Assembly: GCA_965655095.1 (NCBI GenBank)
Contig: OZ296649.1
Coordinates: 87,792,001 to 87,856,000 of the forward strand
Source of the DNA: Haplodiscus bocki
Taxonomy: Eukaryota
Length of the DNA: 64,000 bases
Direction of reading: 5' to 3'
Shown here: positions 2,499-47,944 of the stretch, piece after piece
Position numbering within the stretch: position 1 is the stretch's first letter
Layout: each line of letters starts with the position of its first letter
The notes under the pieces: generated by a model
Database searches by the model: none
Told to the model about the DNA's origin: nothing
Seen by the model: only the letters and a program-made list of their open reading frames with translations
Made by a program: the position numbers and the translations under genes

Positions 2499-2501
2499 TC
2501 A

Positions 2502-4747: not shown

Positions 4748-5080
4748 CCGAGCCGATTTACGACCGGCTGGTCTCTTTGGTTGCTCTTTTTTTTCATTGA
4801 GGACGTTTTGCGCGTCCAGTAGGACGGTTAAAACCAGTTGTAGGCGTTTTGCGAACCGTTTCTGCTTTAGCCACCTAGCCACTACTGTTTGAGTCACTGC
4901 ATGGTGTGCCGAAAAGAACATCTTCGGAGGTTCTCTTTGGCATCACCTAGTGTGTTGTATGTTTGTTTGCGAGGGTGCTCCAGTCTCCTTTTTTCTCTCA
5001 CCTTTTTCCCGTTTTTTCGTTAGTTTCCCTTTCCTTCCCCTGTCGTGTGTTTGCTAGGCGGACTGCAAAAATGCAGAGAA
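4748..5080 (+). other. Structured, ETS-like leader upstream of the 18S-derived RNA
   Basis: Hairpin GGACG-ttttgcg-CGTCC (4801-4817), a long hairpin 4902-4947 capped by a C(UUCG)G tetraloop, and a pyrimidine tract at ~4983-5041. Confidence 0.45.
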
Positions 5081-6122
5081 GATCTGAAAAAGATCCCGCT
5101 GGTGGGGGCTACTTGCACCACCGGTCGCAGCTTGAAATCAAAAAGTTTGATGTTTTATGGTAGAGATGGCCTCATTCTCTTACCTTCTAGGTCAGAGAGT
5201 GATTGCATCTAGACCACAAAGCCTGAAAATCTTTGATGTCAAGCCCCAAAATAACCTTAGTAGGAATAAGCATAGGGCCTACTTTCATAAACTCTCTCTC
5301 AGCGCCGTGGTTGGGGCAGGGAGATTACACGTTTCGGCGTTGAAGCTCCCTGTCGGTCAGGGTATCGGTTACCTGTTTGAGAGTTTATGAGGGTGCGGTG
5401 CAGAGCTTATCTCAGGAGAAATTGGTGCTGTGAGCCAGACACACCCAATTTCATCTGGAGGGCGATGCAACGTTTGGGCCGCGGTATATTCATCCAGAGC
5501 TGCACCTGGGACCTGCCTTGTTCTGCTGTCCCGGCTTGAGCGGCGCTTGTACACTTCCCAGGAACTGAAAGGCGAACTGATTTGTGAAGCATTGATCTAG
5601 CATTCAATATCATAATGCATACTGCTTGTCATAGGAGTCATTGTCAACTGAAAACCAAAACTGTACAAATGCTATTTGAAGTTAAGAGTTCTTGGAAGTG
5701 TATAGGTTAGCTTGGGTTCCCTAGGGTGTTTCGCCATTTCCTCGGAAATGGGTTAACACTGGGCTGTGTGAACAAGTTGATGTAAGTATGGTTGGTGTCT
5801 GGCACAGCTTGCGTTCTGCTCTGCAGAACACCCCCAGTCTGAGGGTCTCCGGAAGGGCTCCGACTTGCCGGGTTAGTCAAGAAGGAGAACGAGGCTTTCT
5901 TCAAATGCAAGCTGTCACCCTAACCTGATGGTTAGCCGCGCAACCTGAGGGAGGGAGACACTCCTTGGTGAGTGGGGCCATACGACATCGTCGTGGGCTG
6001 GCTCTGGCGTAAGCGTGTCTCATACGCTTTTGATGATGAATTCCTAGGACCAAGTGCTAAAGACGGGTCGCGCCCGAACTCACAAAGTGCAATTGCCTAC
6101 GCCTTTTGACGGGGTCTTTTTT
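5081..6122 (+). ncRNA. Highly diverged, shortened (~1.04 kb) 18S/SSU rRNA-derived structured RNA lacking the 3' minor (decoding) domain
   Basis: Collinear matches to remembered eukaryotic 18S: ATCTGaaaaaGATCCcGCtgGTgG 5082-5105 (TATCTGGTTGATCCTGCCAGTAG); ATGGTAGagaTGGCCT 5157-5172; aAGCCTGAaAA 5219-5229; TGGAGGGC..GCCGCGGTA 5456-5486 (h18); GgCGAACT..TGtGAAGCATT 5571-5593; GGTTGGTGtcTGGC 5790-5803; TTGcCgGGTTAgTC 5865-5878; GAACGAGgC 5887-5895; CGCGCaACCTGAgGGAG 5937-5953; CGTCGTG 5989-5995; GCTtTTGAtGAtGAATTCCTAG 6026-6047; GCCtTTTG-AC 6101-6110. Many intact stems with G-U pairs favour the + strand. Ends in T6 at 6117-6122. Confidence 0.75.
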
Positions 6123-6144
6123 GCCCCCAAAAGTGGGAAAAACT

Positions 6145-6186
6145 TCGGTATACCTGGAAAAAATTAACGTCGGTATACCTGGAAAA
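6145..6186 (+). terminator. Twin 17-bp direct repeats just downstream of the T6 run; candidate terminator or protein-binding boxes
   Basis: TCGGTATACCTGGAAAA at 6145-6161 and 6170-6186, each containing the palindrome GGTATACC. Role inferred by analogy to Pol I terminator layout. Confidence 0.4.
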
Positions 6187-7630
6187 CCGAGTTTCGGATC
6201 CCGAAGTTTGATGCTTTTGAAAACAAAGTAAAACTGTAGAAACTCCTCAATTTTTGGAAATCTTTGGAGCCTAGGGATTTGCAGAGTTTGTCTTTTTGCG
6301 ATAGTTGTGGAATGAACAAAAAAAATTAGACAAAAATCAACAAAAATTTTGCAAAAACCACCGCCAATATACGGTTGTGTGGGATCTTTTGCCTAAACTA
6401 ATCTGTAGTATTAGCTTGATTTAAAACTGCTGTTTTTTGGAACTCAGTGTCAACCCAAGGATCGGACATAAATTATTATGGGGCTTCTAAACACTCGTTA
6501 CAACAAAAAAAACTAATTTTGGGAGAAGATTTGAGCGTTTGAACAAGTCTGAATTGCGGGTTTCAGGTCCAACTAAGTAACGTCACTAAAAGCTTTTAAA
6601 ACAAGTGACAGTTCCTAGTTTTTTGGAAATCTTCTGTGCTTGTTCAGGCATTAAAGCTGTCAAAAAGCAATTTGTTTCAAAATCCTACACAAAAAATATT
6701 AAATTCGTGAAAAAACTGCTGAAACCAGCGTTCAAACTCTGTTATCTCGGAAATTTTGCGTTAACTTTTTTAGTACTTTGGAATTACACTAACCAGCTGG
6801 TTTTTTGCTTCCAACGCAAATCCAGAGACTTGAACTAACGTGTAAAGGTGCTTTTTGGTACCCTACAAGAAAAAAATGTATTGATAAAAAAATTTCAACG
6901 TTTGAGCAAGTCTGAATTGCGGGTTTCAGGTCCAACTAAATAAAATCGCTAAAAACTTCTAAAACAAGTGATAACTCCTGGTTTTTTGGAAATCTTCTGT
7001 GCTTATGAATGTATAATAGCTGTCAAAAAGAAACTCGTTGCAAAAAACTTGACAAAACTTATTAGATTCCTGAAAAAACAGCTGAAGCCAGTGTTCAAAC
7101 TCTGTTATCTCGGAACTTTTGCGTTATCTTTTTCAGTACTTTGGAACTTTGGAATTACACTAACCAGCTGGTTTTTTTGCTTCCAACGCAAATCCGGAGA
7201 CTTGAACTAACGTGTAAGGGTGCTTTTTGGTACCCTACAAGAAAAAAAAAGTATTGATAAAAAAATATCAACGTTTGAGCAAGTCTGAATTGCGGGCTAC
7301 AGGTCCAACTAAATAACAACGCTAAAAACTTCTATAACAAGTGATAACTCCTGGTTTTTTGGGAATCTTCTGTGCCTATTAAGGTACAAAAGCTGTCGAA
7401 AAGAAATTCGTTGCAAAATACTTACAAAAAATATTAAATTCGTGAAAAAAAACTGCTGAAGCCAGTGTTCAAACTCTGTTATCTCGGAACTTTTGCGTCA
7501 ATGTTTTCAGTACTTCGGAATTAGGCTAACCAGCTGGTTTTTTGCTTCCAACGCAAGTCCGGAGACTAGAACTAACGTGTGAGGACGCTTTTGGTACCCT
7601 ACAAGAAAAAAGTATTGATTTCAACGTTTC
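6187..7630 (+). repeat. Tandem ~360-bp repeats: three conserved units plus a diverged first unit
   Basis: CGTTTGARCAAGTCTGAATTGCGGG at ~6537, 6899 and 7272. Units share TTCAAACTCTGTTATCTCGGAA and TTTTGGTACCCTACAAGAAAAAA. Confidence 0.9.
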
Positions 7631-23969: not shown

Positions 23970-26900
23970 AGGGAGAAAAATACGTTCTCACCCAAAAACA
24001 AACGTCCGAGAAAAAGATTTTTTTCTTGGGGTTATCAACGATTACTTAAGTAAAACCTTTCGTAATTTTGCTGTACAGCTCCGATTAGGCTCAAACACAC
24101 AGGATAGCCGCTTAATTCAACGCACAACGTGAAGGGGTTGCAATGATAAAAAAAGCAACTTTATGAATAAAAAAAATTTCAGCCAAAAAAATGGGTCCTC
24201 AGGTCAACACTTAAACGCTTCGCAACTTTACTGTATGACTTCGATGATGCTCAAACTCACAGAATAACCGCCCAAGTAGATCCGCAATGTGTTGCGGCAT
24301 TAAAAATGGCAACTTTACGAAAAACCAATTGCGTTTTGAGCCGGAAAAGGTCAAAAAATGGGTTTTTTGGTGTTCTCACGTCTGCAATAAAAGGCTTCGG
24401 ATTATTGCTGTCATACCCTGATTATGCTCAAACTCACTGGCTAGCCGCTTAATTGGATGCGCAAGCTGCTGCGATCTTAAAAATGACAACTCTACCGAGA
24501 AAAAATTGCGTTTTGAGCCGGAAGACGTCAAAGAATGGGTTTTTTGGGGTCCTCCAGTCTGCACTAAAACGCTTCGGATTTTTACTGTAAGACCCCAATG
24601 ATGGCCAAACTCACAGGACAGTCTTCCAAAAGGATGCTCAAGGTGATGCGATTTCAAATAGGCAACTTTATTTGGAAAAAAAATTGCGTATTGAGCCGGA
24701 AAACGTCAAAAAATGAATCTGCGGGCAAGACCGCAACGACGTCTAAACATTCTCAAAACCACAAATTGAGCAAATATATCCTTTATAAAGATGTTCAGGT
24801 ATCTGCATGCAACTTTTCAGCTCAAAAACATCATTTTTCGTGACGTACGAAAGCTTCCAAGTTGGACAAATTGGCCCATTATGGGTCCTTTTGGAAATGC
24901 GTGTTTTACCACATCTAAACCTCGCAATTGGGTGCTGTTACGCTGCGGAGACCTCTCACTAAACATGTTGAAGGTGTACCAAAGGGTTCAACATGTTTGA
25001 GTAGAAAAAAATGCGTTTTGAGCCAAAATACGTCAGAAAATTGCGTTTTTTGGGGTCCTCAGGTCTGCACTAGAAGGCTTCTGAAATTTACTGTATGACT
25101 TCGACGATGCTCAAACTCACAGGATAGACGCCCAATTGGATGCGCAAGCTGCTGCGATCTTAAAAAAGGCAACTCTACCGAGAAAAAATTGCGTTTTGAG
25201 CCGGAAGACGTCAAAGAATGGGTTTTTTTGGGGTCCTCACGTCTGCAATAAAACGCTTCGGAATTTTACTGTAAGACCCCAATGATGGTCAAACTCACAG
25301 GACAGTCTTCCAAGAGGATGCTCAAGGTGATGAGATTTCAAAAAGGCAACTTTATTTGGAAAAAAATTGCGTATTGAGCCGGAAAACGTCAAAAAATGAA
25401 TCTGCGGGCAAGACCGCAACGACGTCTAAACATTCTCAAAACCACAAATTGAGCAAATAAATCCTTTATAAAGATGTTCAGGTATTTGCATGCAACTTTT
25501 CAGCTCAAAAACATCATTTTTCGTGACGTACGAAAGCTTCCAATTTGGACAAGTTGGCCCATTATGGGTCCTTTTGGAAATGCGTGTTTTACCACATCTA
25601 AACCTCGCCATTGGGTGCTGTTACGCTCCGCAGACCTCTCACTTAAGATGTTGAAGGTGTACCAAAGGGTTCAACATGTTTGAGTAGAAAAAAATGCGTT
25701 TTGAGCCAAAGTACGTCAAAAAAATGCGTTTTTTGGGGTCCTCAGGTCTGCACTGAAAGGCTTCGGAATTTACTGTATGACTTCGATGATGCTCAAACTC
25801 ACAGGATAGACACCCAATTGGATGCGCAAGGTGCTGCGATCTTGAAAATGGCAACTCTACCGAGATAAAATTGCGTTTTGAGCCGGAAAACGTCAAAGAA
25901 TGGGTTTTTTGGGGTCCTCAAGGCTGCACTTAAACGCTTCGGAAAATTACTGTAAGACCCTGATGATGCTCAAGCTCACTGGATAGCCTCCCAATTTGAT
26001 TCGCAAGGTGTGGCTACAATAAAAGAGATTAACTCATGAGGGAAAATTGCTTTTTGAGCCAAAAAAACTTCGAAATAAAACTGGTTTTCTGGGGTCTTCT
26101 GACATTACCCCAGTGAAACCCTTCGTAATATGGCTGCACTGCTCCGATCGCGCTCAAACCACAAGATAGCCAACAATTTGATAGTAGAACGTGTGCCAGC
26201 AATAAAAAAGGTAACTTACTAATCATTCACCTCGAAAAAACTTGCAAAGAACACTTAAGGGCTAAGCCGGCTACCTATTCGCTGCTTAAAAATCAATCTG
26301 CGGGCAAGACCGCAACAACGTCTAAACGTTCACAAAACCACAAATTGAGTAAATAGATCTTTTATAAAGCTGTTCAGGTATCTGCATGCAACTTTTCAGC
26401 TCAAAAACATCATTTTTCGTGACGTACGAAAGCTTCCAATTTGGACAAGTTGGCCCATTATGGGTCCTTTTGGAAATGCGTGTTTTAATACACCTAAGCC
26501 ATGCAATCCGGTGCCGTAAAGCTCCGCAGACCTCTCACTTAAGATGTTGAAGGTGTACCAAAGGGTTCAACATGTTTGAGTAGAAAAAAATGCGTTTTGA
26601 GCCAAAGTACGTCAAAAAATTGCGTTTTTTGGGGTCCTCAGGTCTGCACTGAAAGGCTTCGGAATTTACTGTATGACTTCGATGATGCTCAAACTCACAG
26701 GATAGACACCCAATTGGATGAGCAAGGTGCTGCGATCTTGAAAATGGCAACTCTACCGAGATAAAATTGCGTTTTGAGCCGGAAAACGTCAAAGAATGGG
26801 TTTTTTGGGGTCCTCAAGGCTGCACTTAAACGCTTCGGAAAATTACTGTAAGACCCTGATGATGCTCAAGCTCACTGGATAGCCGCCCAATTGGATTCGC

Positions 26901-29900
26901 AAGGTGTGGCGACAATAAAAGAGATTAACTCATGGGGGAAATTGCTTTTTGAGCCAAAAAACTTCGAAAAAAAACTGGTTTTCTGGGGTCTTCTGACATT
27001 ACCCCAGTGAAACCCTTCGTAATATGGCTGCACTGCTCCGATCGCGCTCAAACCACAAGATAGCCAACAATTTGATAGTAGAACGTGTGCCAGCAATAAA
27101 AAAGGTAACTTACTAATCATTCAACTCGAAAAAACTTGCAAAGAACACTTAAGGGCTAAGCCGGCTACCTATTCGCTGCTTAAAAATGAATCTGCGGGCA
27201 AGACCGCAACAACGTCTAAACGTTCTCAAAACCATAAATTGAGTAGATAGATCTTTTATAAAGCTGTTCAGGTATCTGCATGCAACTTTTCAGCTCAAAA
27301 ACATCATTTTTCGTGACGTACGAAAGCTTCCAATTTGGACAAGTTGGCCCATTATGGGTCCTTTTGGAAATGCGTGTTTTAATACACCTAAGCCTTGCAA
27401 TCCGGTGCCGTAAAGCTCCGGAGACCTCTCACTAAAGATGTTGAAGGTGTACCAAAGGGTTCAACATGTTTGAGTAGAAAAAAATGCGTTTTGAGCCAAA
27501 ATACGTCAAAAAATTGCGTTTTTTGGGGTCCTCAGGTCTGCACTAGAAGGCTTCTGAAATTTACTGTATGACTTCGATGATGCTCAAACTCACGGGATAG
27601 ACGCCCAATTGGATGCTCAAGCTGCTGCGATCTTAAAAAAGGCAACTCTACCGAGAAAAAATTGCGTTTTGAGCCGGAAGACGTCAAAGAATGGGTTTTT
27701 TGGGGTCCTCCAGTCTGCACTAAAACGCTTCGGAATTTTACTGTAAGACCCTGATGATGCTCAAGCTCACTGGATAGCCACCCAATTGGATTCGCAAGGT
27801 GTGTCGACAATAAAAGAGACTAACTCATGAGGGAAAATTGCTTTTTGAGCCAAAAAACTTCGAAAAAAAACTGGTTTTCTGGGGTCTTCCGACATTACCC
27901 CAGTGAAACCCTTCGTAATATGGCTGCACTGCTCCGATCGGGCTCAAACCACAAGATAGCCAACAATTTGATAGTAGAACGTGTGCTAGCAATAAAAAAG
28001 GTAACTTACTAATCATTCAACTCGAAAAAACTTGCAAAGAACACTTAAGGGCTAAGCCGGCTACCTATTCGCTGCTTAAAAATAAATCTGCGGGCAAGAC
28101 CGCAACAACGTCTAAACGTTCTCAAAACCATAAATTGAGTAGATAGATCTTTTATAAAGCTGTTCAGGTATCTGCATGCAACTTTTCAGCTCAAAAACAT
28201 CATTTTTCGTGACGTACGAAAGCTTCCAATTTGGACAAGTTGGCCCATTATGGGTCCTTTTGGAAATGCGTGTTTTAATACACCTAAGCCTTGCAATCCG
28301 GTGCCGTAAAGCTCCGGAGACCTCTCACTAAAGATGTTGAAGGTGTACCAAAGGGTTCAACATGTTTGAGTAGAAAAAAATGCGTTTTGAGCCAAAATAC
28401 GTCAAAAAATTGCGTTTTTTGGGGTCCTCAGGTCTGCACTAGAAGGCTTCTGAAATTTACTGTATGACTTCGATGATGCTCAAACTCACGGGATAGACGC
28501 CCAATTGGATGCTCAAGCTGCTGCGATCTTAAAAAAGGCAACTCTACCGAGAAAAAATTGCGTTTTGAGCCGGAAGACGTCAAAGAATGGGTTTTTTTGG
28601 GGTCCTCCAGTCTGCACTAAAACGCTTCGGAATTTACTGTAAGACCCCAATGATGCTCAAACTCACAGGACAGTCTTCGAAAAGGATGCTCAAGGTGATG
28701 AGATTTCAAAAAGGCAACTTTATTTGGAAAAAAATTGCGTATTGAGCCGGAAAACGTCAAAAAATGAATCTGCGGGCAAGACCGCAACGACGTCTAAACA
28801 ATCTCAAAACCACAAATTGAGCAAATATATCTTTTATAAAGATGTTTAGGTATCTGCATGCAATTTTTCAGCTCAAAAACATCATTTTTCGTGACGTACG
28901 AAAGCTTCCAATTTGGACAAGTTGGCCAATTATGGGTCCTTTTGGAAATGCGTGTTTTACCACATCCAAACCTCGCAATTGGGTGCTGTTACGCTCCGCA
29001 GACCTCTCACTTAAGATGTTGAAGGTGTATCAAAGGGTTCAACATGTTTGAGTAGAAAAAAATGCGTTTTGAGCTAAAGTACGTCAAAAAATTGCGTTTT
29101 TTGGGGTCCTCAGGTCTGCACTGAAAGGCTTCGGAATTTACTGTATGACTTCGATGATGCTCAAACTCACAGGATAGACACCCAATTGGATGCGCAAGGT
29201 GCTGCGATCTTGAAAATGGCAACTCTACCGAGATAAAATTGCGTTTTGAGCCGGAAAACGTCAAAGAATGGGTTTTTTGGGGTCCTCAAGGCTGCACTTA
29301 AACGCTTCGGAAAATTACTGTGAGACCCTGATGATGCTCAAACTAACTGGATAGCCGCCCAATTGGATTCGCAAGGTGTGGCGACAATAAGAGATTAACT
29401 CATGAGGGAAAATTGCTTTTTGAGCCAAAAAACTTCGAAAAAAAACTGGTTTTCTGGGGTCTTCTGACATTACCCCAGTGAAACCCTTCGTAATATGGCT
29501 GCACTGCTCTGATCGCACTCAAACCACAAGATAGCCAACAATTTCATAGTAGAACGTGTGCCAGCAATAGAAAAGGTAACTTACTAATCATTCAACTCGA
29601 AAAAACTTGCAAAGAACACTTAAGGTCTAAGCCGGCTACCTATTCGCTGCTTACAAATGAATCTGCGGGCAAGACCGCAACAACGTCTAAACATTCTCAA
29701 AACCATAAATTGACTAAATAGATCTTTTATAAAGCTGTTCAGGTATCTGCATGCAACTTTTCAGCTCAAAAACATCATTTTTCGTGACGTACGAAAGCTT
29801 CCAATTTGGACAAGTTGGCCCATTATGGGTCCTTTTGGAAATGCGTGTTTTAATACACCTAAGCCTTGCAATCCGGTGCCGTAAAGCTCCGGAGACCTCT

Positions 29901-30440
29901 CAATAAAGCTGTTGAAGGTGTACCAAAGGTTTCAACAAGTTTGAGTAGAAAAAAATGCGTTTTGAGCCAAAATACATAAAAAAATTGCGTTTTTTGGTGC
30001 CCTCAGGTCTGCACTAGAAGGCTTCTGAAATTTACTGTATGACTTCGATGATGCTAAAACTCACGGGATAGACGCCCAATTGGATGCGCAAGCTGCTGCG
30101 ATCTTAAAAAAGGCAACTCTACCGAGAAAAATTGCGTTTTGAGCCGGAAGACGTCAAAGAATGGGTTTTTTGGGGTCCTCCAGTCTGCACTAAAACGCTT
30201 CGGAATCTTACTGTAAGACCCTGATGATGCTCAAACTAACTGGATAGCCGCCCCATTGGATGCGCAAGGTGTGGCGACAATAACAGAGATAACCTTAAGA
30301 GGAAAAATTGTTTTTGAACCCAAAAAACGTCAAAAAAAATGGGTTTTGGGTTCCTCACGTCTGCACTGAAACGCATCGGATTTTTACTGTATGACTTCCA
30401 AGATGCTCAAACTCACAAAAATGCCGTCCACTTGATTCTA
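23970..30440. repeat. Satellite array S3: ~179-bp monomers in ~895-bp and ~683-bp higher-order units
   Basis: HOR spacer CATTTTTCGTGACGTACGAAAGCTTCC recurs about every 683-900 bp. ORF-track repeats start at 24791, 25474 and 28842. Confidence 0.95.
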
Positions 30441-31480
30441 GAAGTTGCAAAATCAGTAATTTGACGATGTATGGATATAAAAATTACATTTTGGGCGCTG
30501 GAATACCTGGGAAAGCATAACCTTTTGTTTCTCGACGATGCCTTACGTAATTCCTCATTTTGCGCATTTGTGGATATTTGTCACCTGTGCTACACACTAT
30601 TGTTCCTTTTCAGCTGTTCAGAGGCCTTCTACTGTGTATTCAGATCAAAACAAGGCTAACCCTGCCTTCCTCTGTCCTTGTAGCTGTATACAGGTATTCC
30701 GGAGTTTTTGGACACTCAAACGGGTATGGCTCGCATTTCCATGCATTTTCGATCATTTCTAGCCATTTACCACCTTTCTATGGGTTTTTAGAGGCTAGCC
30801 CTAATTTGGGACCTTCTGCTCCAGCCGGCTACTTTTTCGTTGTCGAAATTTTTATCGTAGCCATAGGGTTATGTGATTTTTGGGTTTGGCTCGATTAGCT
30901 GAGCTCGCCCTCGTTTTTTATCTTCGGGAGGTAACTAGAACCCGATTTCCATCAGGCTACCTTCTCGAGGGTCACGTGCTACCTTTTCGCTTAACGAAAA
31001 CGTAGCCGAGGGGCCGGCTACCTTTTCGTTTCTTGATCGCCCTGGCTCCGGCTACCTTTTCGCTAGTGTGCTGCGAAAAGGTAGCCGGGAGCATGGCCGT
31101 TTCCCAGATCGACTCCACAATAACAGCATGCTGCCGTTTCATGCAACGGATAGAAAAAAAGCTTGTCTCAGCCATAGTTGGCAGCAGGAGCCCATAGGAA
31201 AAAGATCGCGTTAGAATTTTTTGTAAAAATTATTTGTGGAACTCCAACGGTTTATTTATTCCTTCAGCTTTTTTATTCTTTTATCATCTATTCATGGCCC
31301 CTCAAGAAAGGTTAGTTTATTTAATTATTCATGTCTCAATTATTTAACGGTTAGGCGTTATGTGTAACGCGATAAACATTCGTATGAAGACACCACGACT
31401 AAACAACACATTTATGGATAATTGACAAATTTCGTGTCTATGTACCCTGAGTATTGACTTTCAATTATTTTTTTTCTATC
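30440..31480. mobile_element. Putative element end block, copy A, with clustered GGCTACCTTTTCG motifs and a 16-9-16 inverted repeat
   Basis: Motif copies at 30824, 30955, 30978, 30995(-), 31013, 31048 and 31073(-). The satellite stops at its left edge and a 5'-truncated Gypsy gag begins at its right edge. Exact terminus not determined. Confidence 0.5.
31048..31088. other. Perfect 16-bp inverted repeat with 9-bp spacer; candidate recombinase site
   Basis: CCGGCTACCTTTTCGC-TAGTGTGCT-GCGAAAAGGTAGCCGG, identical at 35096-35136 and 47512-47552. Confidence 0.6.
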
Positions 31481-31502
31481 AATAGAAAAAAACTTAACAG
31501 CA

Positions 31503-32480
31503 ATGGTTATCGATTCAGTTGAAGAAACCGAAGCTTTAGAGAATGAAAACACCAACAGAGAGCTCGAAAGTAGGAAAGCAAAAGCTTCTTCAACGCCTGG
31601 CAAGCAGGCCGGTGGGCCATCAGCTTTTGGCGGTCATTTTCCACAATTATTGGAGGTTGACTAACTTTTGCTCCACCTGTAGCAACCTGCTTAACAGGTT
31701 TCTCACAATCACTTCCGTCATGATTGATGCCAGAACCGTTCAACGGATCGGGAGAATGTGAGGACTACTTGGGTCAATTTAACATTGCCGCATATCTGTC
31801 GGGCTGGTATCGCCAATGTTCACACAATTATCGACCTCAATATTTTGCGCTCCGATTAAAAGGCAATGCACTTCATTTTTTTTTCAACTTTCAGAGGACC
31901 ACCAACATGACTTCCACATTCTGGTGGATGCTTTCCGTCAAAATTACACCACAAACGTAGAAATTTTGAAAGCTCGACCGAAGGCCGCCAGGCAACAACC
32001 TGGACACGACGTCACCACATTTCATTGCAACATTAGCACGTTAGCCCGCAGCGCTCATCGCGACAACCCGCATTTACTTAAACAAATTGTCGTAACTAGC
32101 TTCATTGAAGGCATAAATAACTCTACCCTCTGATCGGAATTGAGAAACCTGAAACCTGAGAACGATGACCATGCCTTGACAAAAGCACCCGAACTCCAGG
32201 CGTACCTGGAATTAGAGGAACGAAACCCCATTGGGACTGCCATCGGCAGTTCCCCTGGTGTGAATCATATGAAAATTCAGTTCCCGATAGCAAAAACACA
32301 GTTATTTTTGACCAATTTGTCCGGTCGCCCCAAAGAGACACCGATAACGTTCCGAAGAATCGCAACCGAGGATCACGCGAGAATTCTCGTGGCGGAGAGC
32401 GAGAAAGAAACGGCTCCATGGACAGAAGCCAGAATGACTCACGAGAGAACAGAAAAAGCAGATAGTAACTGACACGAGAC
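31503..32480 (+). pseudogene. gag: Truncated Gypsy gag fragment, copy A
   Basis: MPEPFNGSGECEDYLGQFNIAAYLSGWY..PQYFALRLKGNA. Same sequence as 47967-48945; breaks into satellite after ..ACACGAGAC. Confidence 0.8.
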
Positions 32481-34490
32481 CCTGATGATGCTCAAACTAA
32501 CTGGATAGCCGCCCAATTGGATTCGCAAGGTGTGGCGACAATAAGAGATTAACTCATGAGGGAAAATTGCTTTTTGAGCCAAAAAACTTCGAAAAAAAAA
32601 CTGGTTTTCTGGGGTCTTCTGACATTACCCCAGTGAAACCCTTCGTAATATGGCTGCACTGCTCTGATCGCACTCAAACCACAAGATAGCCAACAATTTC
32701 ATAGTAGAACGTGTGCCAGCAATAGAAAAGGTAACTTACTAATCATTCAACTCGAAAAAACTTGCAAAGAACACTTAAGGTCTAAGCCGGCTACCTATTC
32801 GCTGCTTACAAATGAATCTGCGGGCAAGACCGCAACAACGTCTAAACATTCTCAAAACCATAAATTGACTAAATAGATCTTTTATAAAGCTGTTCAGGTA
32901 TCTGCATGCAACTTTTCAGCTCAAAAACATCATTTTTCGTGACGTACGAAAGCTTCCAATTTGGACAAGTTGGCCCATTATGGGTCCTTTTGGAAATGCG
33001 TGTTTTAATACACCTAAGCCTTGCAATCCGGTGCCGTAAAGCTCCGGAGACCTCTCAATAAAGCTGTTGAAGGTGTACCAAAGGTTTCAACAAGTTTGAG
33101 TAGAAAAAAATGCGTTTTGAGCCAAAATACATAAAAAAATTGCGTTTTTTGGTGCCCTCAGGTCTGCACTAGAAGGCTTCGGAATTTACTGTATGACTTC
33201 GATGATGCTCAAACTCACAGGATAGACACCCAATTGGATGCGCAAGGTGCTGCGATCTTGAAAATGGCAACTCTACCGAGATAAAATTGCGTTTTGAGCC
33301 GGAAAACGTCAAAGAATGGGTTTTTTGGGGTCCTCAAGGCTGCACTTAAACGCTTCGGAAAATTACTGTGAGACCCTGATGATGCTCAAACTAACTGGAT
33401 AGCCGCCCAATTGGATTCGCAAGGTGTGGCGACAATAAGAGATTAACTCATGAGGGAAAATTGCTTTTTGAGCCAAAAAACTTCGAAAAAAAACTGGTTT
33501 TCTGGGGTCTTCTGACATTACCCCAGTGAAACCCTTCGTAATATGGCTGCACTGCTCTGATCGCACTCAAACCACAAGATAGCCAACAATTTCATAGTAG
33601 AACGTGTGCCAGCAATAGAAAAGGTAACTTACTAATCATTCAACTCGAAAAAACTTGCAAAGAACACTTAAGGTCTAAGCCGGCTACCTATTCGCTGCTT
33701 ACAAATGAATCTGCGGGCAAGACCGCAACAACGTCTAAACATTCTCAAAACCATAAATTGACTAAATAGATCTTTTATAAAGCTGTTCAGGTATCTGCAT
33801 GCAACTTTTCAGCTCAAAAACATCATTTTTCGTGACGTACGAAAGCTTCCAATTTGGACAAGTTGGCCCATTATGGGTCCTTTTGGAAATGCGTGTTTTA
33901 ATACACCTAAGCCTTGCAATCCGGTGCCGTAAAGCTCCGGAGACCTCTCAATAAAGCTGTTGAAGGTGTACCAAAGGTTTCAACAAGTTTGAGTAGAAAA
34001 AAATGCGTTTTGAGCCAAAATACATAAAAAAATTGCGTTTTTTGGTGCCCTCAGGTCTGCACTAGAAGGCTTCTGAAATTTACTGTATGACTTCGATGAT
34101 GCTAAAACTCACGGGATAGACGCCCAATTGGATGCGCAAGCTGCTGCGATCTTAAAAAAGGCAACTCTACCGAGAAAAATTGCGTTTTGAGCCGGAAGAC
34201 GTCAAAGAATGGGTTTTTTGGGGTCCTCCAGTCTGCACTAAAACGCTTCGGAATCTTACTGTAAGACCCTGATGATGCTCAAACTAACTGGATAGCCGCC
34301 CCATTGGATGCGCAAGGTGTGGCGACAATAACAGAGATAACCTTAAGAGGAAAAATTGTTTTTGAACCCAAAAAACGTCAAAAAAAATGGGTTTTGGGTT
34401 CCTCACGTCTGCACTGAAACGCATCGGATTTTTACTGTATGACTTCCAAGATGCTCAAACTCACAAAAATGCCGTCCACTTGATTCTAGA
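32481..34490. repeat. Satellite array S4
   Basis: Duplicate of ~29327-30440 with one extra HOR unit, giving an offset of 4048 bp between end blocks A and B. Confidence 0.95.
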
Positions 34491-35528
34491 AGTTGCAAAA
34501 TCAGTAATTTGACGATGTATGGATATAAAAATTACATTTTGGGCGCTGGAATACCTGGGAAAGCATAACCTTTTGTTTCTCGACGATGCCTTACGTAATT
34601 CCTCATTTTGCGCATTTGTGGATATTTGTCACCTGTGCTACACACTATTGTTCCTTTTCAGCTGTTCAGAGGCCTTCTACTGTGTATTCAGATCAAAACA
34701 AGGCTAACCCTGCCTTCCTCTGTCCTTGTAGCTGTATACAGGTATTCCGGAGTTTTTGGACACTCAAACGGGTATGGCTCGCATTTCCATGCATTTTCGA
34801 TCATTTCTAGCCATTTACCACCTTTCTATGGGTTTTTAGAGGCTAGCCCTAATTTGGGACCTTCTGCTCCAGCCGGCTACTTTTTCGTTGTCGAAATTTT
34901 TATCGTAGCCATAGGGTTATGTGATTTTTGGGTTTGGCTCGATTAGCTGAGCTCGCCCTCGTTTTTTATCTTCGGGAGGTAACTAGAACCCGATTTCCAT
35001 CAGGCTACCTTCTCGAGGGTCACGTGCTACCTTTTCGCTTAACGAAAACGTAGCCGAGGGGCCGGCTACCTTTTCGTTTCTTGATCGCCCTGGCTCCGGC
35101 TACCTTTTCGCTAGTGTGCTGCGAAAAGGTAGCCGGGAGCATGGCCGTTTCCCAGATCGACTCCACAATAACAGCATGCTGCCGTTTCATGCAACGGATA
35201 GAAAAAAAGCTTGTCTCAGCCATAGTTGGCAGCAGGAGCCCATAGGAAAAAGATCGCGTTAGAATTTTTTGTAAAAATTATTTGTGGAACTCCAACGGTT
35301 TATTTATTCCTTCAGCTTTTTTATTCTTTTATCATCTATTCATGGCCCCTCAAGAAAGGTTAGTTTATTTAATTATTCATGTCTCAATTATTTAACGGTT
35401 AGGCGTTATGTGTAACGCGATAAACATTCGTATGAAGACACCACGACTAAACAACACATTTATGGATAATTGACAAATTTCGTGTCTATGTACCCTGAGT
35501 ATTGACTTTCAATTATTTTTTTTCCATC
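34490..35528. mobile_element. Putative element end block, copy B
   Basis: Essentially identical to 30440-31480. Confidence 0.5.
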
Positions 35529-37543: not shown

Positions 37544-40500
37544 ATGCCTCGTGAAAACTTCAAAGTTCTTCCCTATACCTCTGAAGAGTACTCCTTCAAC
37601 GAAGTTGATGAGAACGATGAACGCTGCGGTTAGGTCCAATTCCAATCCTTCTCTTCCGCCAATAAAGAGGAAAAGATTCTTTGGATGTTTTAAATTTCAT
37701 TTCCATAAAAGGCAAACTATTTTAAGACCTCTTCAACTCTGAATTAACTGTAATGTTTACCAAAAGAATCACACGAAATGCTGAAATAGCTTCTGAAAAG
37801 AACATTTTTGGTTCTATGGAAATCTTTAGGAGCCCCCCTTGTGGTACCACCCTCAAGGAACATGTCACCCGATGATGCCATCATCGACTCCGAGAGAAGA
37901 TCCAAGCGCGGTCAAAAGAATGTGGAGGAATGGCAATATCTGTACCAAGACCAGGAAGGTTTTGAAAAAGCCTTCATTAGCCAGGAGAAAGGCTATGGAT
38001 TGGTGGCAACGCGCTTCTTTGAGAAGGGCTCCTTTCTATTGTTTTACAGAGGACGACGGATCAGTAGACGCGAAGCTGACTTGAAAATAGCCGTAAGATT
38101 CGAGGAAGCTTTGATTTGATTACTTTCGCAAAGCATATGAATAAAAACTGTTGCAAAAATGATTTTTTTAGGAGGGAAAAAACGAATACATCTATTCAGG
38201 TGAGAAGAGTAATCTTCTCATTGATGCTTCCGATGAGGACTCTGGGCCTGCGCGTTTCATGAACAACGCAAATAAAAAAGCGCACGTGAAGGCTGGGCCA
38301 TATAGAGATGGCGGTTAGTTTCATTTATCTAAATTATTTAAACTAGGAGTAAAAAACGTAAAATTATGTTTACGTTGTAGCTGGAGTTGAACGTGCGTTT
38401 CACAGCATTGCGCGACATAAACAAGGGAGAAGAGTTGGTTTACGACTACAATGGCGTAGGTCTCTTTTGGCGAGTCAAGAACCAAAACAGGGTTTTTTGA
38501 ATAAAATTACTGATTTGAAATCTTTGATGAATTAATCATTCAAATATTCCAGGGATATCAAGCCAAAATATCTGGAAGTGTCCCAACCTGAAACGTAAAT
38601 TTCCCCGTTTTTAAAATTATTAATGAAACATCGCAAGCAGTATCTTTCCAGACTGAACTTTTTCCAAGACTCCTATTCAAAGTACATGCGTCTTTAGTAC
38701 TAAGTAAGTTTTCTCTTGCAGTCGAAATTACGAAAGCAAGTCGAAGTTCAATTCTTCGTGTGTTTTCTCTTCCAGAGCCCAGGCGGTCCGAAAATTGATA
38801 CGCGAAGACGGAGAAAGTTCCCAAGCAGAAAATGAACGCTTTCAAATTTACACTAAGAAGCAATCATGCACAAGAAACCCGTAAGCAAAATACTTTTCCG
38901 GATAAAACAGTATTATAGAGCTGTCATATTCAATACTTTCTGTGTTTTAGGGGTTTTGCAGGACATAACCAACAATGAGAGCGAAAACTTCGTTGAAACT
39001 GTTTACCTTTCTGACAGTTAGACATTTTTTTCTTTGACTGACCTGAAAAAGCAATTTGGTCACGAACGAGATTTTTTCCCCTTTTTAGCAAGTCTGCCGG
39101 AAGACAGTCTCTACAGAGTTCCAGATGAGCCCATGTCGAATGTGTTTTTTTGAAGTACAAGCGGCCATCGAAGGCAAGGACAAACTGATTGCTCAAAGAC
39201 AGTTAAATTCCCAACGGTAACAATCACTCATCTCTTTCCTTGCAAGGCAAAGCATGTAGAGACGCATCCTGATTTGCAGCCTGAAAAACCTCGAGAATGA
39301 ACGTCGCAAGAAAATGAAAGCTAGATCGGAAATGGGTTTTTCGCAACCCGAACCAACAACCGAAAACAATGCCAGAGCCAGGGAGGAAAGCGACTGCGAA
39401 CATTAAGTCACAAAAACAAAATGTTACCTGGGAAAAATTGAAAATTTTAGAAAAAACCAGCACTCAATCGACAGACACACTCCGCCCCAACAACCTGTCA
39501 GCTTCTCTAGGCATAAGTAACCATTTCTGGTAGGCATTTTTGATTATAATGTTGCTAGAGACCAATACGTAAAAACGCCTTTTCTCCAGCGAACCTTCGA
39601 AATCAAAAAAGAGGCACGAGATGTACAGCCCCTTCTTCACAGCGAGCACAGAAGAAGATGAGCCAAAAATTCACAGCAAACGTGGTCAAAAGATGAAGCC
39701 ACGACGAAAACAAGGGAAGTCTTTGCGAGTTTTCAAGAAGAAAAACTCCTGAAACTTACCGTCTCCAAACATAGAAAACAGGTTCTTTCGAGTTTCGTTG
39801 AAAAGTTGATATTTTACTAACAAACCTAAATAACTAAACGGATTTTTCCAGTCCGCATGCAAAAATTACAACCTGCGACGAAGAACCCAAAACGCCAACT
39901 GCTCTGAAACAGCATATAAATCGGTTTGGTGTCTAAATTATCTAACGTAAAATATTCTAAAATTTCTATTTGAGATACAGTTGGTTTTTTTTCACAGACC
40001 GCTTGCTGACGTGACGAATCATCCAGCCCTAGACAAAGCTGCTGTCGATAGCCCGGAGTGAGTTTTTTAAATCATTATATTAAATAATTCCCCTTCTAGC
40101 GACAGTTTGAAGCACTTGCACGATTTTTAAGATATGAGGACTTTGAGAGGGACAGGAGAGAGAAAGTGAAGTCGAAAAAACCTTTGCCAGCTGAACTTCT
40201 TCCAATTCGCCAACTCAGTGAGAGTGAACCCCTTCTTGATTGTGCCGAGTGAGTACTTATATCGACAAACTTCTTTTGATTCAAGCCAGAAGCAACATGA
40301 GTTGAACCAAACCAAAATTTCGTTTCAGTTAGTCGCCGAATCCCAACGTAACTCACTTGACGACAGAAGAATGGAGTGAAATGATGGAGAGGCTGACTTG
40401 CTTGCCAGTTTGGACAGAGAATAGGTTCGTGTGAAACGGAGTTTAACCTCGGAAAAATGAAGCTTTTCATCGGAAAGGCAAGCTGCAAATCTATTGTGCT

Positions 40501-43500
40501 TCTATTTTTTAACGTGCAAGAAGAAAGCAATGCAAGTGGATTCTGAATAATTACAGGAATCGAGCTCAACGGAAAGTGAAATAAGTTCTGGCTGTGACGA
40601 ATTTACAACGGACGTGGACCACAGTCCCTCCGAGCTTGGAAACTCAACCAAAGGCTTGGTCCCTCAACAACAGGGAAAAAGCAAAAAGTATATTGCGATC
40701 GTTTTTGAATGTTTTCACTGCCTAAATTCTTATGTTTCGAAAGTTTATTCTTTGATGGCTAGGAAAAAAAGTAAACATGCTGTACAAATTAAAAAAGAGG
40801 ACTTGCAAAAAAAATTACCGGAAAAATCGATTTCGCAAACAAATATTTTTCGATCGCTAATGAATGTTTTCACTGCATATTTTTTTGTTTTCTGAAACTT
40901 CGTTCTTTGATGCCTAGAAGGAAGACTAAACATCCTGTACAAATTAAGGAAACGGGCTGTCAAAAAAAGCTGAGGGTGAGTATTAAAAACCACAAAATTA
41001 ACGTTTTCATTCTACAAGTTCCCCAAATGATTTCGAAAGTGTTTGTTTCAGTGATTTCTGTTGCCGCATGGTTTGTCACAAAAAAATACACAACAAGGGC
41101 ATTAAGCGCCACGTCCAGAGAAATCAACAGCAAATCTGGAAAAACAACGTTGACGATCTTGTGGTCAAGTTGTCGCTCTTTTTCTCCAGAGAGCAGAGGG
41201 GCAAAAAGTATGTGTGCGCAGTTGAAGACTGCCTGAAAACAACTTCTAGAAAAAAGGAGCACCGATGCCACTTGCAGGACCTTGTGCTGGTCAAAAAGAG
41301 AAGTGACCTGTCTCTGAACATCTCCAATATAATTTTCCCACAACCAATAGACGGTGAGATGCTAAATTGCTTCACTATGTTTTGCAAATTTGGAAGACAA
41401 CAGATGTGTAGAAGACTTAGTTATAATTTTTTTCTTCTGAAACAACAGGACTTTAAAATCGAAATAAATATGTGTTGTTTTCCAGACGCCTCCAATGAGT
41501 TTGGGAAGTTTGCGCAAATTGCCGACTTTAGAAAAATCATTGACGGCTACATTGCCAACCGAACTCAACTCTTCAAGCGCGGTGCTGAACGTTATAACGA
41601 GAAGGCGCTCAACCTGCAGGTCAAGAGGATTAAGGAGTTCATCTTGGCATCGGATGAACTCACCAATGCCTCAGTTTTCCCCGTTTTCTTGGCCAGCCTT
41701 CCAAATGTGCACGCGCCCAAAAGCTGTCAAAACGTAGCCAACAATATCAAAGAGTTCCTGAACTTGGTTGAGCGTTTTGGGTCTGACGGACCAGGAATGA
41801 GGACAGCAGTCGAACCTGAAAGCATTAAGGCACAACTTACCCCCTATAAGCAAACTCTCGATAAACCTGCCCGCCAGTGGCGGAACACCCAAGTCCTGCT
41901 TGATTTTCAAGGAATGCCTTCTCAGACTGAGCTGAAGGAAGTACGATCAAAAGTCATCAACTTGACTGAAACTTTGATAGAAAAGGGCTTGAACAGAGGA
42001 CATTTAGTAGATGAGGACTTTTTGATGCTTCTGAAGGGTTTGGTCTGCCTTGTGGTAATGAGGAACGCATGCAGAGTTTCCTCTGGAATTTACATCAAGA
42101 ACGAGCATTACATGTTTCGTTGTAAAGGCCCACAATGGAAGAACTATAAAAGTCCACTCTGCCCTCCGAACCAGATTGTGAGGAAACCGTAAGATTTTTC
42201 GAACTAACTTTTTGCCATTAATGATATTGAACACCTTGCCACCAGTTGCTTATTGCAAAATCAGTTTTTGGGCAAACTTAGGTCTCGAACACGGGAAATT
42301 GTTTATGGGGGAGTTTTTTTACGAATAGAGACAGTTTTGTGTCAGGGAAAGTCACTGAGCAAACTCAAACGTAACGCAAAATTTGAGCATTTATTCAGTG
42401 ATGAGAAGAAGTGGCAGGCAATTGAACGGTGGACAGAAGAAGGGAAGGAGAGCAATAAAAACTATGACACAGAAGCCCTAACTGTTCTCTCGCTCTCAAC
42501 CGAAGAAGTTGCAATCTTCGACCGCTTCGCAAAACTTAAGAAAGAACTGGGACTGGTACGTTTGAAAAAAAATATTACTTCAATTTTTTCAAAAACCCAG
42601 AAAGGAAGCGGCCTTACAATTCCCTTCAAAAAATTCGATCGAGATCTCGGAAAGCAGTTAAATATTACAATCAGATTTAATTCAACCATCTTCCGAAAGA
42701 AAATGCAGACTCTTTGGAGTCAAAAAGTCCAGCATCCCAAGGACTTGCAGACGATTAATACTGCAATGGGCCAGGGTTGGTGGACGGGTTTGATGCATTA
42801 CACTTTCCAAAACAAATATACTGCCAGTTAATTCGTCTGTCAAACTGTGGAGCTGAACGTGAGTCTTTTTCCTCAGCGTTAGAAAAAAATTAACCAACTG
42901 GTTAAGGTAATTTGAGAAATAAAAAAATATATTTTTTCTAGAATTATTTAATGATTTCTTACATTGTATACTATATTTCCCAAAATATTAAATTAAAATT
43001 TAAAATATAAGAAAGCAAGTAATTTGAAATATATGTTTTAGGACAATGACTATCTGCCGGAGATTGGCGGCCCTCAAACTTCCAGCTTACACAGAACCAT
43101 CACAACTGTAACTTAAAAGCTGACACTATAATTGATTAGCAAATATTCGATTTTTTTTGTGTTCTCCAAAGTAATTATTTTTGTTCCAGAGCTCTGTCGC
43201 ACCTCTTGAAAACTCTTCCGACGACTGTTCCGAAGATCAGTGCAGCAATGGCTCACAAAGTGAAGATCTGATGGTATTGCTTTTGTAAAAGAACAAATGA
43301 AATTTAGTTGAGCTTAAAGCCTTCGATACTACTATATTTTAGCAGGAAGATGAGACAACAGATTTTGGAACCGTACAGTCCACAGATCAAGTGGGTGTGA
43401 TCGACTTTTCTGAAAAGTTTGCTCAAATTTTGGATCAGATATTGAATTTTCTGAACTTTTACACAATTCAACATCATAAATTGCTAACTGCACCAATTCC

Positions 43501-44549: not shown

Positions 44550-46760
44550 AGGGAGAAAAATACGTTCTCACCCAAAAACAAACGTGCGAGAAAAAGATTT
44601 TTTTCTTGGGGTTATCAACGATTACTTGACTAAAACCTTTCGTAATTTTGCTGTACAGCTCCGATTAGGCTCAAACACACAGGATAGCCGCTTAATTCAA
44701 CGCACAACGTGAAGGGGTTGCAATGATAAAAAAAAGCAACTTTATAAAAAAAATTTCAGCCAAAAAAATGGGTCCTCAGGTGTGCACTTAAACGCTTCGC
44801 AACTTTACTGTATGACTTCGATGATGCTCAAACTCACAGAATAACCGCCCAATTAGATGCGCAAGGTGTTGCGGCATTAAAAATGGCAACTTTACCAAAA
44901 ACCAATTGCGTTTTGAGCCGGAAAACGTCAAAAAATGGCTTTTTTTTGGGGTTCTCACGTCTGCAATAAAACGCTTCGGAATTTTACTGTAAGACCCCAA
45001 TGATGGTCAAACTCACAGGACAGTCTTCCAAAAGAATGCTCAAGGTGATGCGATTCCAAAAAGGCAACTTTATTTAGAAAAAAATTGCGTTTTGAGCCGG
45101 AAAACGTCAAAAAATGAACCTGCGGGCAAGACCGCAACGACGTCTAAACATTCTCAAAACCACAAACTGAGCAAATATATCCTTTATAAAGATGTTCAGG
45201 TATCTGCATGCAACTTTTCAGCTCAAAAACATCATTTTTTGTGACGTACGAAAACTTCCAGTTTGGACAAGTTGGCCCATTATGGGTCCATTTGCAAATG
45301 CGTGTTTTACCACATCTAAACCTCGCAATTGGGTGCTGTTACGCTCCGGAGACCTCTCACTAAACATGTTGAAGGTGTACCAAAGGGTTCAACATGTTTG
45401 AGTAGAAAAAAATGCGTTTTGAGCCAAAATACGTCAAAAAATGCGTTTTTTGGGGTTCTCAGGTCTGCACTAGAAGGCTTCTGAAACTTACTGCATGACT
45501 TCGATGATGCTCAAACTCACGGGATAGACGCCCAAGTGGATGCGCAAGCTGCTGCGATCTTAAAAAAGGCAACTCTACCGAGAAAAAATTGCGTTTTGAG
45601 CCGGAAAACATCAAAGAATGGGTTTTTTGGGGGTCCTCAAGGCTGCACTTAAACGCTTCGGAAAATTACTGTAAGACCCTGATGATGCTCAAACTCACTG
45701 GATAGCCGCCCAATTGGATTCGCAAGGTGTGGCGACAATAAAAGAGATTAACTCATGAGGGAAAATTGCTTTTTGAGCCAAAAAACTGGTTTTCTGGGGT
45801 CTTCTGACATTACCCCAGTGAAACCCTTCGTAATATGGCTGCACTGATCCGATCGCGCTCAAACCACAAGATAGCCACCAATTTGATAGTAGAACGTGTG
45901 CCAGCAATAAAAAAGGTAACTTACTAATCATTCAACTCGAAAAAACTTGCAAAGAACACTTAAGGGCTAAGCCTGCTACCTATTCGCTGCTTAAAAATGA
46001 ATCAGCGGGCAAGACCGCAACAACGTCTAAACGTTCTCAAAACCATAAATTGAGTAAATGGATCCTTTATAAAGCTGTTCAGGTATCTGCATACAACTTT
46101 TCAGCTCAAAAACATCATTTTTCGTGACGTACGAAAGCTTCCAATTTGGACAAGTTGGCCCATTATGGGTCCTTTTGGAAATGCGTGTTTTAATACACCT
46201 AAGCCTTGCAATCCGGTGCCGTAAAGCTCCGGAGACCTCTCAATAAAGCTGTTGAAGGTGTATCAAAGGTTTCAACAAGTTTGAGTAGAAAAAAAATGCG
46301 TTTTGAGCCAAAATACGTCAAAAAATTGCGTTTTTTGGGGTCCTCAGGTCTGCACTAGAAGGCTTCTGAAATTTACTGTATGACTTCGATGATGCTCAAA
46401 CTCACGGGATAGACGCCCAATTGGATGCGCAAGCTGCTGCGATCTTAAAAAAGGCAACTCTACCGAGAAAAATTGCGTTTTGAGCCGGAAGACATCAAAG
46501 AATGGGTTTTTCGGGGTCCTCCAGTCTGCACTAAAACGCTTCGGAATCTTACTGTAAGACCCTGATGATGCTCAAACTAACTGGATAGCCACCCCATGGT
46601 GACAATAACAGAGATAACCTTAAGAGGAAAAACTGCTTTTTGAGCCCAAAAAACGTCAAAAAAATGGCTTTTGGGTTCCTCACGTCTGCACTAAAACGCA
46701 TCGGATTTTTACTGTATGACTTCCAAGATGCTCAAAATCACAAAAATGCCGTCCACTTGA
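44550..46760. repeat. Satellite array S6
   Basis: Same monomer and HOR spacer motifs. Confidence 0.95.
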
Positions 46761-47944
46761 TTCTAGAAGTTGCAAAATCAATAATTTGACGATGTATGGA
46801 TATAAAAATTACATTTTGGGCACTGGAATACCTGGGAAAGCATAACCTTTTGTTTCTCGACGATGCCTTACGTACTTCCTCATTTTGCGCATTTGTGGAT
46901 ATTTGTCACCTGTGCTACACACTATTGTTCCTTTTCAGCTGTTCAGAGGCCTTCTACTGTGTATTCAGATCAAAACAAGGCTAACCCTGCCTTCCTCTGT
47001 CCTTGTAGCTGTATACAGGTATTCCGGAGTTTTTGGACACTGAAACGGGTAAAGCTCGCATTTTCAGTCATTTCTAACCTTTTACTGTCTTTCTACAGTG
47101 TTTCCTGGCAAAGACAAGGCTAACCCTACCCGTAGATGTGTTTGTAGCCGTTCATAGGTATTCCAGGGTTTTTGGACACTCAAACGGGTATGGCTCGCAT
47201 TTCCATGCATTTTCGATCATTTCTAGCCATTTACCACCTTTCTATGGGTTTTTAGAGGCTAGCCCTAATTTGGGACCTTCTGCTCCAGCCGGCTACTTTT
47301 TCGTTGTCGAAATTTTTATCGTAGCCATAGGGTTATGTGATTTTTGGGTTTGGCTCGATTAGCTGAGCTCGCCCTCGTTTTTTATCTTCGGGAGGTAACT
47401 AGAACCCGATTTCCATCAGGCTACCTTCTCGAGGGTCACGTGCTACCTTTGCGCTTAACGAAAACGTAGCCGAGGGGCCGGCTACCTTTTCGTTCCTTGG
47501 TCGCCCTGGCTCCGGCTACCTTTTCGCTAGTGTGCTGCGAAAAGGTAGCCGGGAGCAGGGCCGTTTCCCAGATCGACTCCAAAATAACAGCATGCTGCCG
47601 TTTCATGCAACGAACAGAAAAAACGCTTGTCTCAGCCATAGTTGGCAGCAGGAGCCCATAGGAAGAAGATCGCGTTAGAATTTTTTGTAAAAATTATTTG
47701 TGGAACTCCAACGGTTTAATTATTCCTTCAGCTTTTTTATTCTTTTATCATCTATTCATGGCCCCTCAAGAAAGGTTAGTTTATTTAATTATTCATGTCT
47801 CAATTATTTAACGTTTAGGCGTTATGTGTAACGCGATAAACATTCGTATGAAGACACCACGACTAAACAACACATTTATGGATAATTGACAAATTTCGTG
47901 TCTATGTACCCTGAGTATTGACTTTCAATTATTTTTTTTCCATC
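46760..47944. mobile_element. Putative element end block, copy C, retaining two ~138-bp internal repeat units where A and B have one
   Basis: CAAGGCTAACCCT..AGGTATTCC..TTTTTGGACACT.AAACGGGTA occurs twice in ~46975-47200. Motif cluster and inverted repeat at 47288-47552. Confidence 0.5.

Follow-up and report, generated by a model that had tools for sequence, protein, structure and literature searches.

What does a compact block of repeated 13-nt motifs do when it closes in a perfect palindrome and lies beside a satellite that carries almost the same word, and to which element does it belong? The question is raised by a 64,000-nucleotide stretch of the 1.5 Gb genome of Haplodiscus bocki (C2:87792001-87856000, hereafter the window; its own numbering is used below, and features lie on its forward strand unless marked otherwise). 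Self-comparison and a tandem-repeat scan resolved four classes of component in the window: a body of ~8 kb, satellite arrays, a 1.85-kb segment and other repeats. The body is present in three copies of 97% identity (A to C; 7381-15405, 16569-23794 and 36987-45016). The 1.85-kb segment also occurs three times (30627-32480, 34675-36524 and 47091-48948; 97-98% identity), each copy starting with the block in question, and the 177-bp satellite arrays are arranged as units of ~895 bp.

Body copy C contains SET-domain exons (37808..38476), which align to the SET part of SET fusions with a tyrosine recombinase (YR) in other assemblies, and a zinc-finger/YR gene (41068..42831) with exon 1 at 41068-42189, a short intron with a GTAAGA donor, and exon 2 reaching 42831. 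Almost all YR copies in the genome are preceded by a 5-kb non-coding region (2500..7400 in the window). Its nucleotide identity is still 77-87% between loci at which YR protein identity has fallen to 35-45%; conservation is thus far higher here than in the coding part (for example at C11:81928914-81933749 and C485:32350-36350).

A seven-site block at the right end of a low-copy element

With up to two mismatches allowed, GGCTACCTTTTCG matched the window 29 times, compared to 1.29 matches expected and a maximum of 5 in 100 shuffles. Seven matches with 0-1 mismatch lie within 30827-31086, five of them forward and two inverted (starts at 30827+, 30955+, 30977+, 30995-, 31016+, 31050+ and 31074-), in agreement with a first-pass annotation of the sequence that had counted at least seven copies in both orientations within 265 bp. 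The word in the window reads GGC-TACC-TTTTCG and follows the general form GGC-NNNN-TTTTCG. Along the block, the sites are ordered as two singles, an inverted 13-5-13 pair (sites 3 and 4; 30977..31007) that is kept in the related loci L001, L002, L004 and L018, another single, and a terminal inverted pair with TTTTCG boxes 11 nt apart. The five extra sites thus all lie upstream of the terminal pair, with a spacing conserved across families. The last two sites, with 11 nt between the 13-mers, form the perfect 16-9-16 palindrome that the annotation had also described, its arms at 31048-31063 and 31073-31088 flanking a 9-nt spacer. Imperfect symmetry of this terminal palindrome (31039..31097) reaches 25-nt arms (31039-31063 and 31073-31097) that are 84% complementary, and its DNA hairpin has a z-score of -5.0.

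The first copy of the block (30824..31096) follows a conserved leader (30627..30823), which was delimited by a MAFFT alignment of five families and by nhmmer and contains a conserved TAGCCCTAA about 25 nt 5' of site 1. The second copy (34872..35144) derives from a 4,048-bp tandem duplication, and the third (47288..47560) lies 3' of body copy C. Four independent public runs of this species yielded contigs that span 30775-31134. At position 31094, a single contig of run X1 (depth 41 of 120) has G for T, giving GCAGGG as at the end of L003; this G could reflect allelic variation, a different copy or simply an error.

The low-copy sequence of the element extends to 31096, 8 nt past the palindrome, and summed contig depth jumps from ~100 to ~100,000 exactly at 31097; loose ends before this position read into LTR-family sequence. 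What adjoins is not element sequence: the final ~280 bp of a 2.3-kb LTR from an unrelated ~17-kb LTR element (31097..31375) are followed by a 1.1-kb dispersed repeat (31372..32464) with >3,500 candidate copies of ~81% identity. The same LTR was seen at L006 2795-5108 and L008 252-2562; its family has many full copies, with LTR pairs 16.5-17.9 kb apart, and the dispersed repeat recurs at 35420-36508 and 47836-48932. The block thus sits at an element end, as the first-pass annotation had proposed. One junction is common to all three blocks of the window, so they represent one end copied by local duplication rather than three insertions.

Alignment of the window with L001-L004 showed that homology ends 7-14 nt beyond the right palindrome arm. 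Both arms, including the family-specific core, were present at 9/9 ends, and element sequence ran ~8 nt further, so the palindrome is not the point at which element and flank are joined. The suggestion that it is a loxP-like integration crossover fails here, for it is split at none of the nine element-flank junctions. A mirror-image cluster at the left end, also anticipated by the annotation, was not found: the left ends that are visible, those of tandem neighbours of L002 and L018, begin with forward sites. In both of these head-to-tail pairs (L002 with an L003-type element, and L018 with its neighbour), the next element starts directly after a CCCT(AA) remnant, and what it begins with is a forward copy of its own site. 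No circle junctions were found in Logan contigs from public runs, a type of contig that cannot show rare forms.

Simple repeats recur just beyond the element end. In the examined loci and the window, (CCCTAA)2-3 occurs only three times, at L001, L003 and L018, each time 10-35 nt past the terminal palindrome and in the same orientation. A genome-wide search for GGAGCANGG followed by CCCTAACCC, with one mismatch allowed, returned 18 junctions, compared to 0 for a control pattern. Two of them lie 27-35 kb from the start of contig C6 (26930 and 35260) and three 13-68 kb from the end of C11 (91754894, 91786473 and 91810085; contig end at 91,823,066), and the end of L020 is joined to a long (CTC)n tract. 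These junctions suggest an element that homes to simple repeats, as Crypton-like site-specific integration would give (PMC9977147). Several junction copies form tandems within tens of kilobases of two contig ends, in the orientation expected of attachment distal to older telomeric repeats. Five-unit CCCTAA tracts have 2,375 matches genome-wide; most are short and interstitial, and they occur on all large contigs.

Conserved geometry and concerted replacement of the four-letter core

Diverged copies of the block, at 70-80% identity, were found by DNA search with the window block, and further loci were taken from the regions downstream of diverged recombinase-like gene copies. The blocks of L005, L018, L020 and L021 were recognised with an nhmmer profile and by direct inspection, most diverged blocks having escaped a generic k-mer cluster finder. 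In total, eight diverged relatives with similar site spacing are present in the same genome (L001-L005, L018, L020 and L021), with YR proteins 29-72% identical. At 8/8 loci (the window, L002, L003, L004, L005, L018, L020 and L021), with or without a satellite, the YR gene is followed at a distance of 2-3.5 kb by a block on its own strand; L004 has no satellite between the two. The cluster is therefore not the property of an unrelated transposable element, which would have undone the annotation's link between block, satellite and YR. Across the genome, 81 YR protein matches fall at roughly 25-30 loci on many contigs, and the flanks diverge just past the palindrome. Each family is found at one locus or a few clustered loci, and head-to-tail tandems are frequent.

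The seven-site layout is common to the window and L001, L002, L003 and L004 in the alignment. Start-to-start distances between sites are 128, 22, 18, 21, 34 and 24 nt in the window, and 130, 22, 18, 21, 34 and 24 nt in both L001 and L002. In L004 they are 129, 22, 18, 21 and 34 nt, the last arm having decayed, and L003 and L005 have the outer distances of the window and nearly the same spacing throughout. Even L020, whose YR is just 29% identical to that of the window and whose word is ATGACGTCTTTGG, shows distances of 130, 44, 18, 35 and 27 nt. The inner pair is always separated by 5 nt. In the terminal pair, TTTTCG and CGAAAA stand 11 nt apart in four families (the window, L001, L002 and L018) and 10 nt apart in L003.

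The four central letters of the site differ from family to family. L001, L002 and L004 have GGC-GAGG-TTTTCG, L003 has GGC-GTGA/GTGG-TT(A/T)TCG, and L005 has GAGA and GAGT cores; the words of L018 and L021 are CGAGGGATTTTCG and GGTGTTGGTTTTTG, respectively. Between the window and L001 or L002, 20/28 core positions differ, compared to 4-5/63 of the other site positions (7%) and 104-107/393 spacer positions (27%). Fisher tests of core against spacer gave p values of 2e-6 to 4e-6 for L001 and L002, and 5e-11 for L003. By these comparisons, the sites are conserved above their surroundings except in the core, which was exchanged at all of them together. Genome-wide, exact TACC sites cluster at the window locus only and exact GAGG sites on C57 and C2:13.18-13.20 Mb only; motif scans found no other TACC cluster in the window and no second TACC locus in the genome. 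Since families with different cores coexist in one genome, the reader of the site should be family-specific and hence element-encoded, and the coexisting cores thus point to a site-reading protein of this kind.

The satellite and the recombinase gene

The element-borne satellite of the window spans 24193..30413, with GCCGGCTACCTATTCGCT sites starting at 26269, 27163, 28059 and 29634. Satellite of the same kind lies at 32477..34461 (sites at 32789 and 33682) and, between body copy C and the third block, at 44770..46743, where one degenerate site starts at 45974. An older, ~83% identical array (1..2497), 5' of the 5-kb non-coding region, has a site with a TACC core at 1558, and a further degenerate copy starts at 15693. 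Each ~895-bp unit consists of three 177-bp monomers without a site and a ~350-bp non-satellite segment, which has a single 18-nt site at its start; the remaining 98% of the unit is other sequence. The satellite site is always single and forward, never an inverted pair. Similarity between unit and block is limited to 17-22 nt, and derivation of the block from a satellite fragment, or the reverse, was ruled out by the lack of homology outside this site.

The flanks of the satellite site are orthologous in the window, L001 and L002, yet its core differs: TACC throughout the window, even in the old 83%-identical arrays (1558 and 15693), but GAGG in L001 and L002; a GTGG core was found in a single satellite unit adjoining a GTGA-type element. 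Between families, the ~350-bp segment is 72-94% identical, compared to 42-66% for the monomers. Monomers of the 177-bp family also follow the gene in distant families (L011, L013, L015, L016, L017 and L020), so the satellite is an old component of these elements, and the site-bearing 350-bp segment is limited to the clade of the window, C57 and C2:13.18. The first-pass annotation had noted that a near-identical word recurs once per satellite unit, which holds for GCCGGCTACCTATTCGCT at one per ~895 bp, and had concluded that the satellite is an expanded array of binding sites. This conclusion stands in part: the satellite site shares the core of the block and co-varies with it, but there is only one site in each unit and the monomers have none. 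Conservation within the unit peaks (87-94% between families) 100-170 nt after the site, at 26330-26420 in the window; this peak contains a small palindrome, TTTCGT-GAC-GTACGAAA, which reuses the TTTCG/CGAAA boxes.

The two YR exons were searched separately. A profile of exon 2 built from seven loci matched the archaeal tyrosine recombinase XerA (5hxy) with E = 8e-4. Of the R-H-R-Y catalytic set expected of a Crypton recombinase, the alignment matched the box-II Arg (T-x-x-R) and the Tyr nucleophile, together with the GH motif; a box-I Arg was recognised in exon 1 by eye. In L011, an intron with the donor GTGAGT occupies the position of the GTAAGA intron of the window. Pfam returned no recombinase match in eight window ORFs or ten ORFs of relatives, a PDB sequence search with single exons gave no match, and an Atlas search provided a weak lead to DUF3435 (0.81). 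Body copies A and B contain stop codons, and most copies in the genome are riddled with them. No RT domain was found in window frames of at least 150 aa or in the long ORFs of relatives.

Relatives of this protein are scarce. A word search found only five close ones, and an exhaustive profile search only 47 among 1.84 billion representatives. The longest include zinc-finger proteins and SET-YR fusions: P0012 (1124 aa) and P0020 (1367 aa), both from other ENA assemblies, each join an N-terminal SET domain and a C-terminal YR-like domain in one polypeptide, so the SET-YR link is conserved outside the H. bocki genome. P0012 aligns both to the SET exons of the window (37952-38476) and to the recombinase exon, and the distant relative P0052 has a weak Phage_integrase match. 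Judged by these matches, the protein belongs to a rare SET/zinc-finger/YR lineage of the Crypton kind. One cluster, P0022 (738 aa), comprises 14 almost identical members spread over different contigs and possibly represents an active family.

A candidate docking array and its alternatives

We propose, with a probability of about 0.6, that the block acts in cis as the right-terminal module of a Crypton-like SET/zinc-finger/YR element and forms a docking array for one of the element's own proteins, most probably the YR. We infer both the identity of the binding protein and the reaction that it would drive from the features described above. An element-encoded, family-specific DNA-binding protein would occupy all seven sites and build one nucleoprotein complex; if this protein is the YR, as seems most likely, it could bind through its catalytic and core-binding domains or through an N-terminal zinc finger. 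By analogy with TnpI/IRS of Tn4430, the terminal inverted pair might serve as the catalytic core, and the one-sided extra sites would be accessory, fixing the geometry and direction of recombination. The reaction would take place on directly repeated or tandem copies, as resolution, excision as circles or copy-number control. The same protein may recognise the site in each satellite unit, in which case the satellite sites would be additional docking points at low density. Several observations weigh against a docking array: the family of the window occupies a single locus, where its three blocks share one junction; the core switch, satellite included, is essentially one evolutionary event that separates the window lineage from its sisters; the box-II His is replaced by Thr across the family; and the YR copy of the window has Gln for the conserved His of the GH motif.

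In the IRS of Tn4430, an IR1-IR2 core is accompanied on one side by DR1 and DR2, copies of the same motif that impose the geometry of the synapse and its direction (PMC2847244). Both systems combine an inverted pair of a motif, bound by the YR in Tn4430 and a putative YR motif in the block, with one-sided copies of the same motif. The IRS, however, packs four motifs into 116 bp in the interior of a bacterial transposon that a DDE transposase mobilises, whereas the block has seven sites in 265 bp and lies at the very end of a eukaryotic element with the YR as its only recombinase. With loxP and FRT, the block shares inverted recombinase arms of ~13 nt around a short spacer, and FRT contains, in addition, a third arm in direct orientation. 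Compared to these sites, the spacer of the block is 9 nt long (11 nt between the 13-mers) instead of 8, five further sites are present, and the site is unsplit at element junctions. By its arrangement, the block would therefore seem to resemble TnpI/IRS more than a simple loxP.

Near their ends, CACTA/En-Spm and Ac elements carry a short motif many times over, in either orientation, to which a protein of the element binds. The likeness to the block lies in these many copies and orientations; CACTA/En-Spm and Ac differ in having terminal inverted repeats, a DDE transposase and motif clusters at both ends, none of which was seen here. The definition of Cryptons rests largely on a lack of recognisable ends, and to our knowledge the cis-acting sites of eukaryotic YR transposons are almost undescribed. 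The H. bocki group resembles Cryptons in its YR gene with an intron, the absence of an RT in the frames tested and its dispersed copies, as well as in likely integration at short sequence-specific targets, comparable to CAYCG for CryptonF-1_cRei (PMC9977147). It differs by the addition of a SET domain, an element-borne satellite, the 5-kb conserved non-coding region and the seven-site module. Described Cryptons have just terminal direct repeats of 4-6 bp and no terminal repeat arrays; in the wider literature on Crypton, DIRS, Ngaro and Starship elements, the published ends are short direct, split direct or terminal inverted repeats, with no multi-site array (PMC3212892; PMC13465315).

The main alternative is that the block acts through nucleic-acid structure, as DNA or RNA hairpins or cruciforms, for example at a replication or nicking origin, at a transcript 3' end or in alternative pairings, and that its sites co-vary to stay complementary. 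The terminal palindrome and the pair of sites 3 and 4 fold strongly, each forward site finds its complement in one of the two inverted sites, changes are compensatory in both arms of each pair, and the block lies on the strand of the YR gene, downstream of it. In principle, forward sites could thus pair with inverted ones, and a pairing constraint would also yield co-variation. Retention of GGC and TTTTCG around four changing letters, however, fits a protein contact surface better than a stem, and hairpins do not need the fixed 22/18/21/34/24 spacing of unpaired singles. Moreover, the satellite site, kilobases away, switched as well, and there is no Rfam match in the whole window. We therefore regard an origin of the pattern in structure as unlikely and prefer the docking of a protein.

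It is quite improbable, in our judgement, that the loci are instead copies of a SET-YR gene cluster, either of the host or domesticated, that segmental duplication has spread, with the block as a regulatory or boundary array. Such a cluster would account for the restriction of each family to one or a few neighbouring loci, often as head-to-tail tandems, and the preservation of the 5-kb non-coding region despite the divergence of the YR suggests selection or gene conversion. The ~25-30 loci are nevertheless spread over many chromosomes, with unrelated flanks that start at the same point past the palindrome; most copies are interrupted by many stop codons; and CCCTAA repeats adjoin 18 of the ends, with (CTC)n at one more. 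A terminal module of a mobile element remains our preferred reading.

We give similarly little credence to the strict form of the first proposal, in which the 16-9-16 palindrome is itself a loxP-like integration crossover and the satellite an amplified array of such sites. Inverted arms of 13-16 nt around a short spacer are the canonical core layout of YR sites (PMC3212892), the box-to-box distance of 11 nt is constant in four families, and the satellite units carry the same word. A crossover in the spacer would nonetheless leave half a palindrome at each junction, whereas both arms persist at nine ends, and a unit with one forward site amid 98% other sequence does not look like an amplified palindrome. 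That the shared cores are a functionless by-product of homogenisation, through gene conversion or repeated re-copying, is very improbable: satellites do undergo concerted evolution and local duplication is rampant in the window, but the sites are islands of 13-18 nt in unrelated flanks, too short for ordinary conversion tracts, their non-core positions changed far less (7%) than the spacers (27%), and the geometry was kept over deep divergence.

If a docking array is the correct reading, the block offers a complete and testable candidate site, with seven positions in a fixed geometry, and the natural swap of specificity among TACC, GAGG and GTGA is a built-in control for binding and recombination assays. 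The co-varying site ties a satellite repeat to a transposon protein, rare sequence evidence that a satellite can be maintained within the machinery of an element. The junctions with telomere-type repeats, some of them near two contig ends, make this a possible telomere-associated element at the DNA level in an animal. Tentatively, and with more doubt than confidence, we suggest that these loci may represent hitherto undescribed animal DNA elements, which would combine a histone-methyltransferase-like SET domain fused or linked to a YR, a nucleosome-length satellite of their own seeded with recombinase docking sites, and a terminal recombination module of seven sites. A joint switch of the four-letter specificity core, in protein and sites alike, would have made sister families mutually incompatible. 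Insertion would be directed to simple repeats, among them telomeric TTAGGG tracts and the ends of chromosomes.

Two loci have additional genes beside the element. At L014 (C11:82093500-82103490, minus strand), ORFs at positions 39-5422, 3' of the YR and on its strand, encode a Pox_A32-type packaging ATPase (E = 3e-8) and a double jelly-roll capsid domain (E = 5e-12), and look like a Polinton/virophage-like insert. These capsid and packaging-ATPase genes were rejected as part of the element, being absent from L016, whose YR is 94% identical, and from all other copies. At L003 (C2, ~13.155 Mb), a 310-aa frame on the reverse strand (5088-6017), directly after the element end, appears MATH/TRAF-like by eye.
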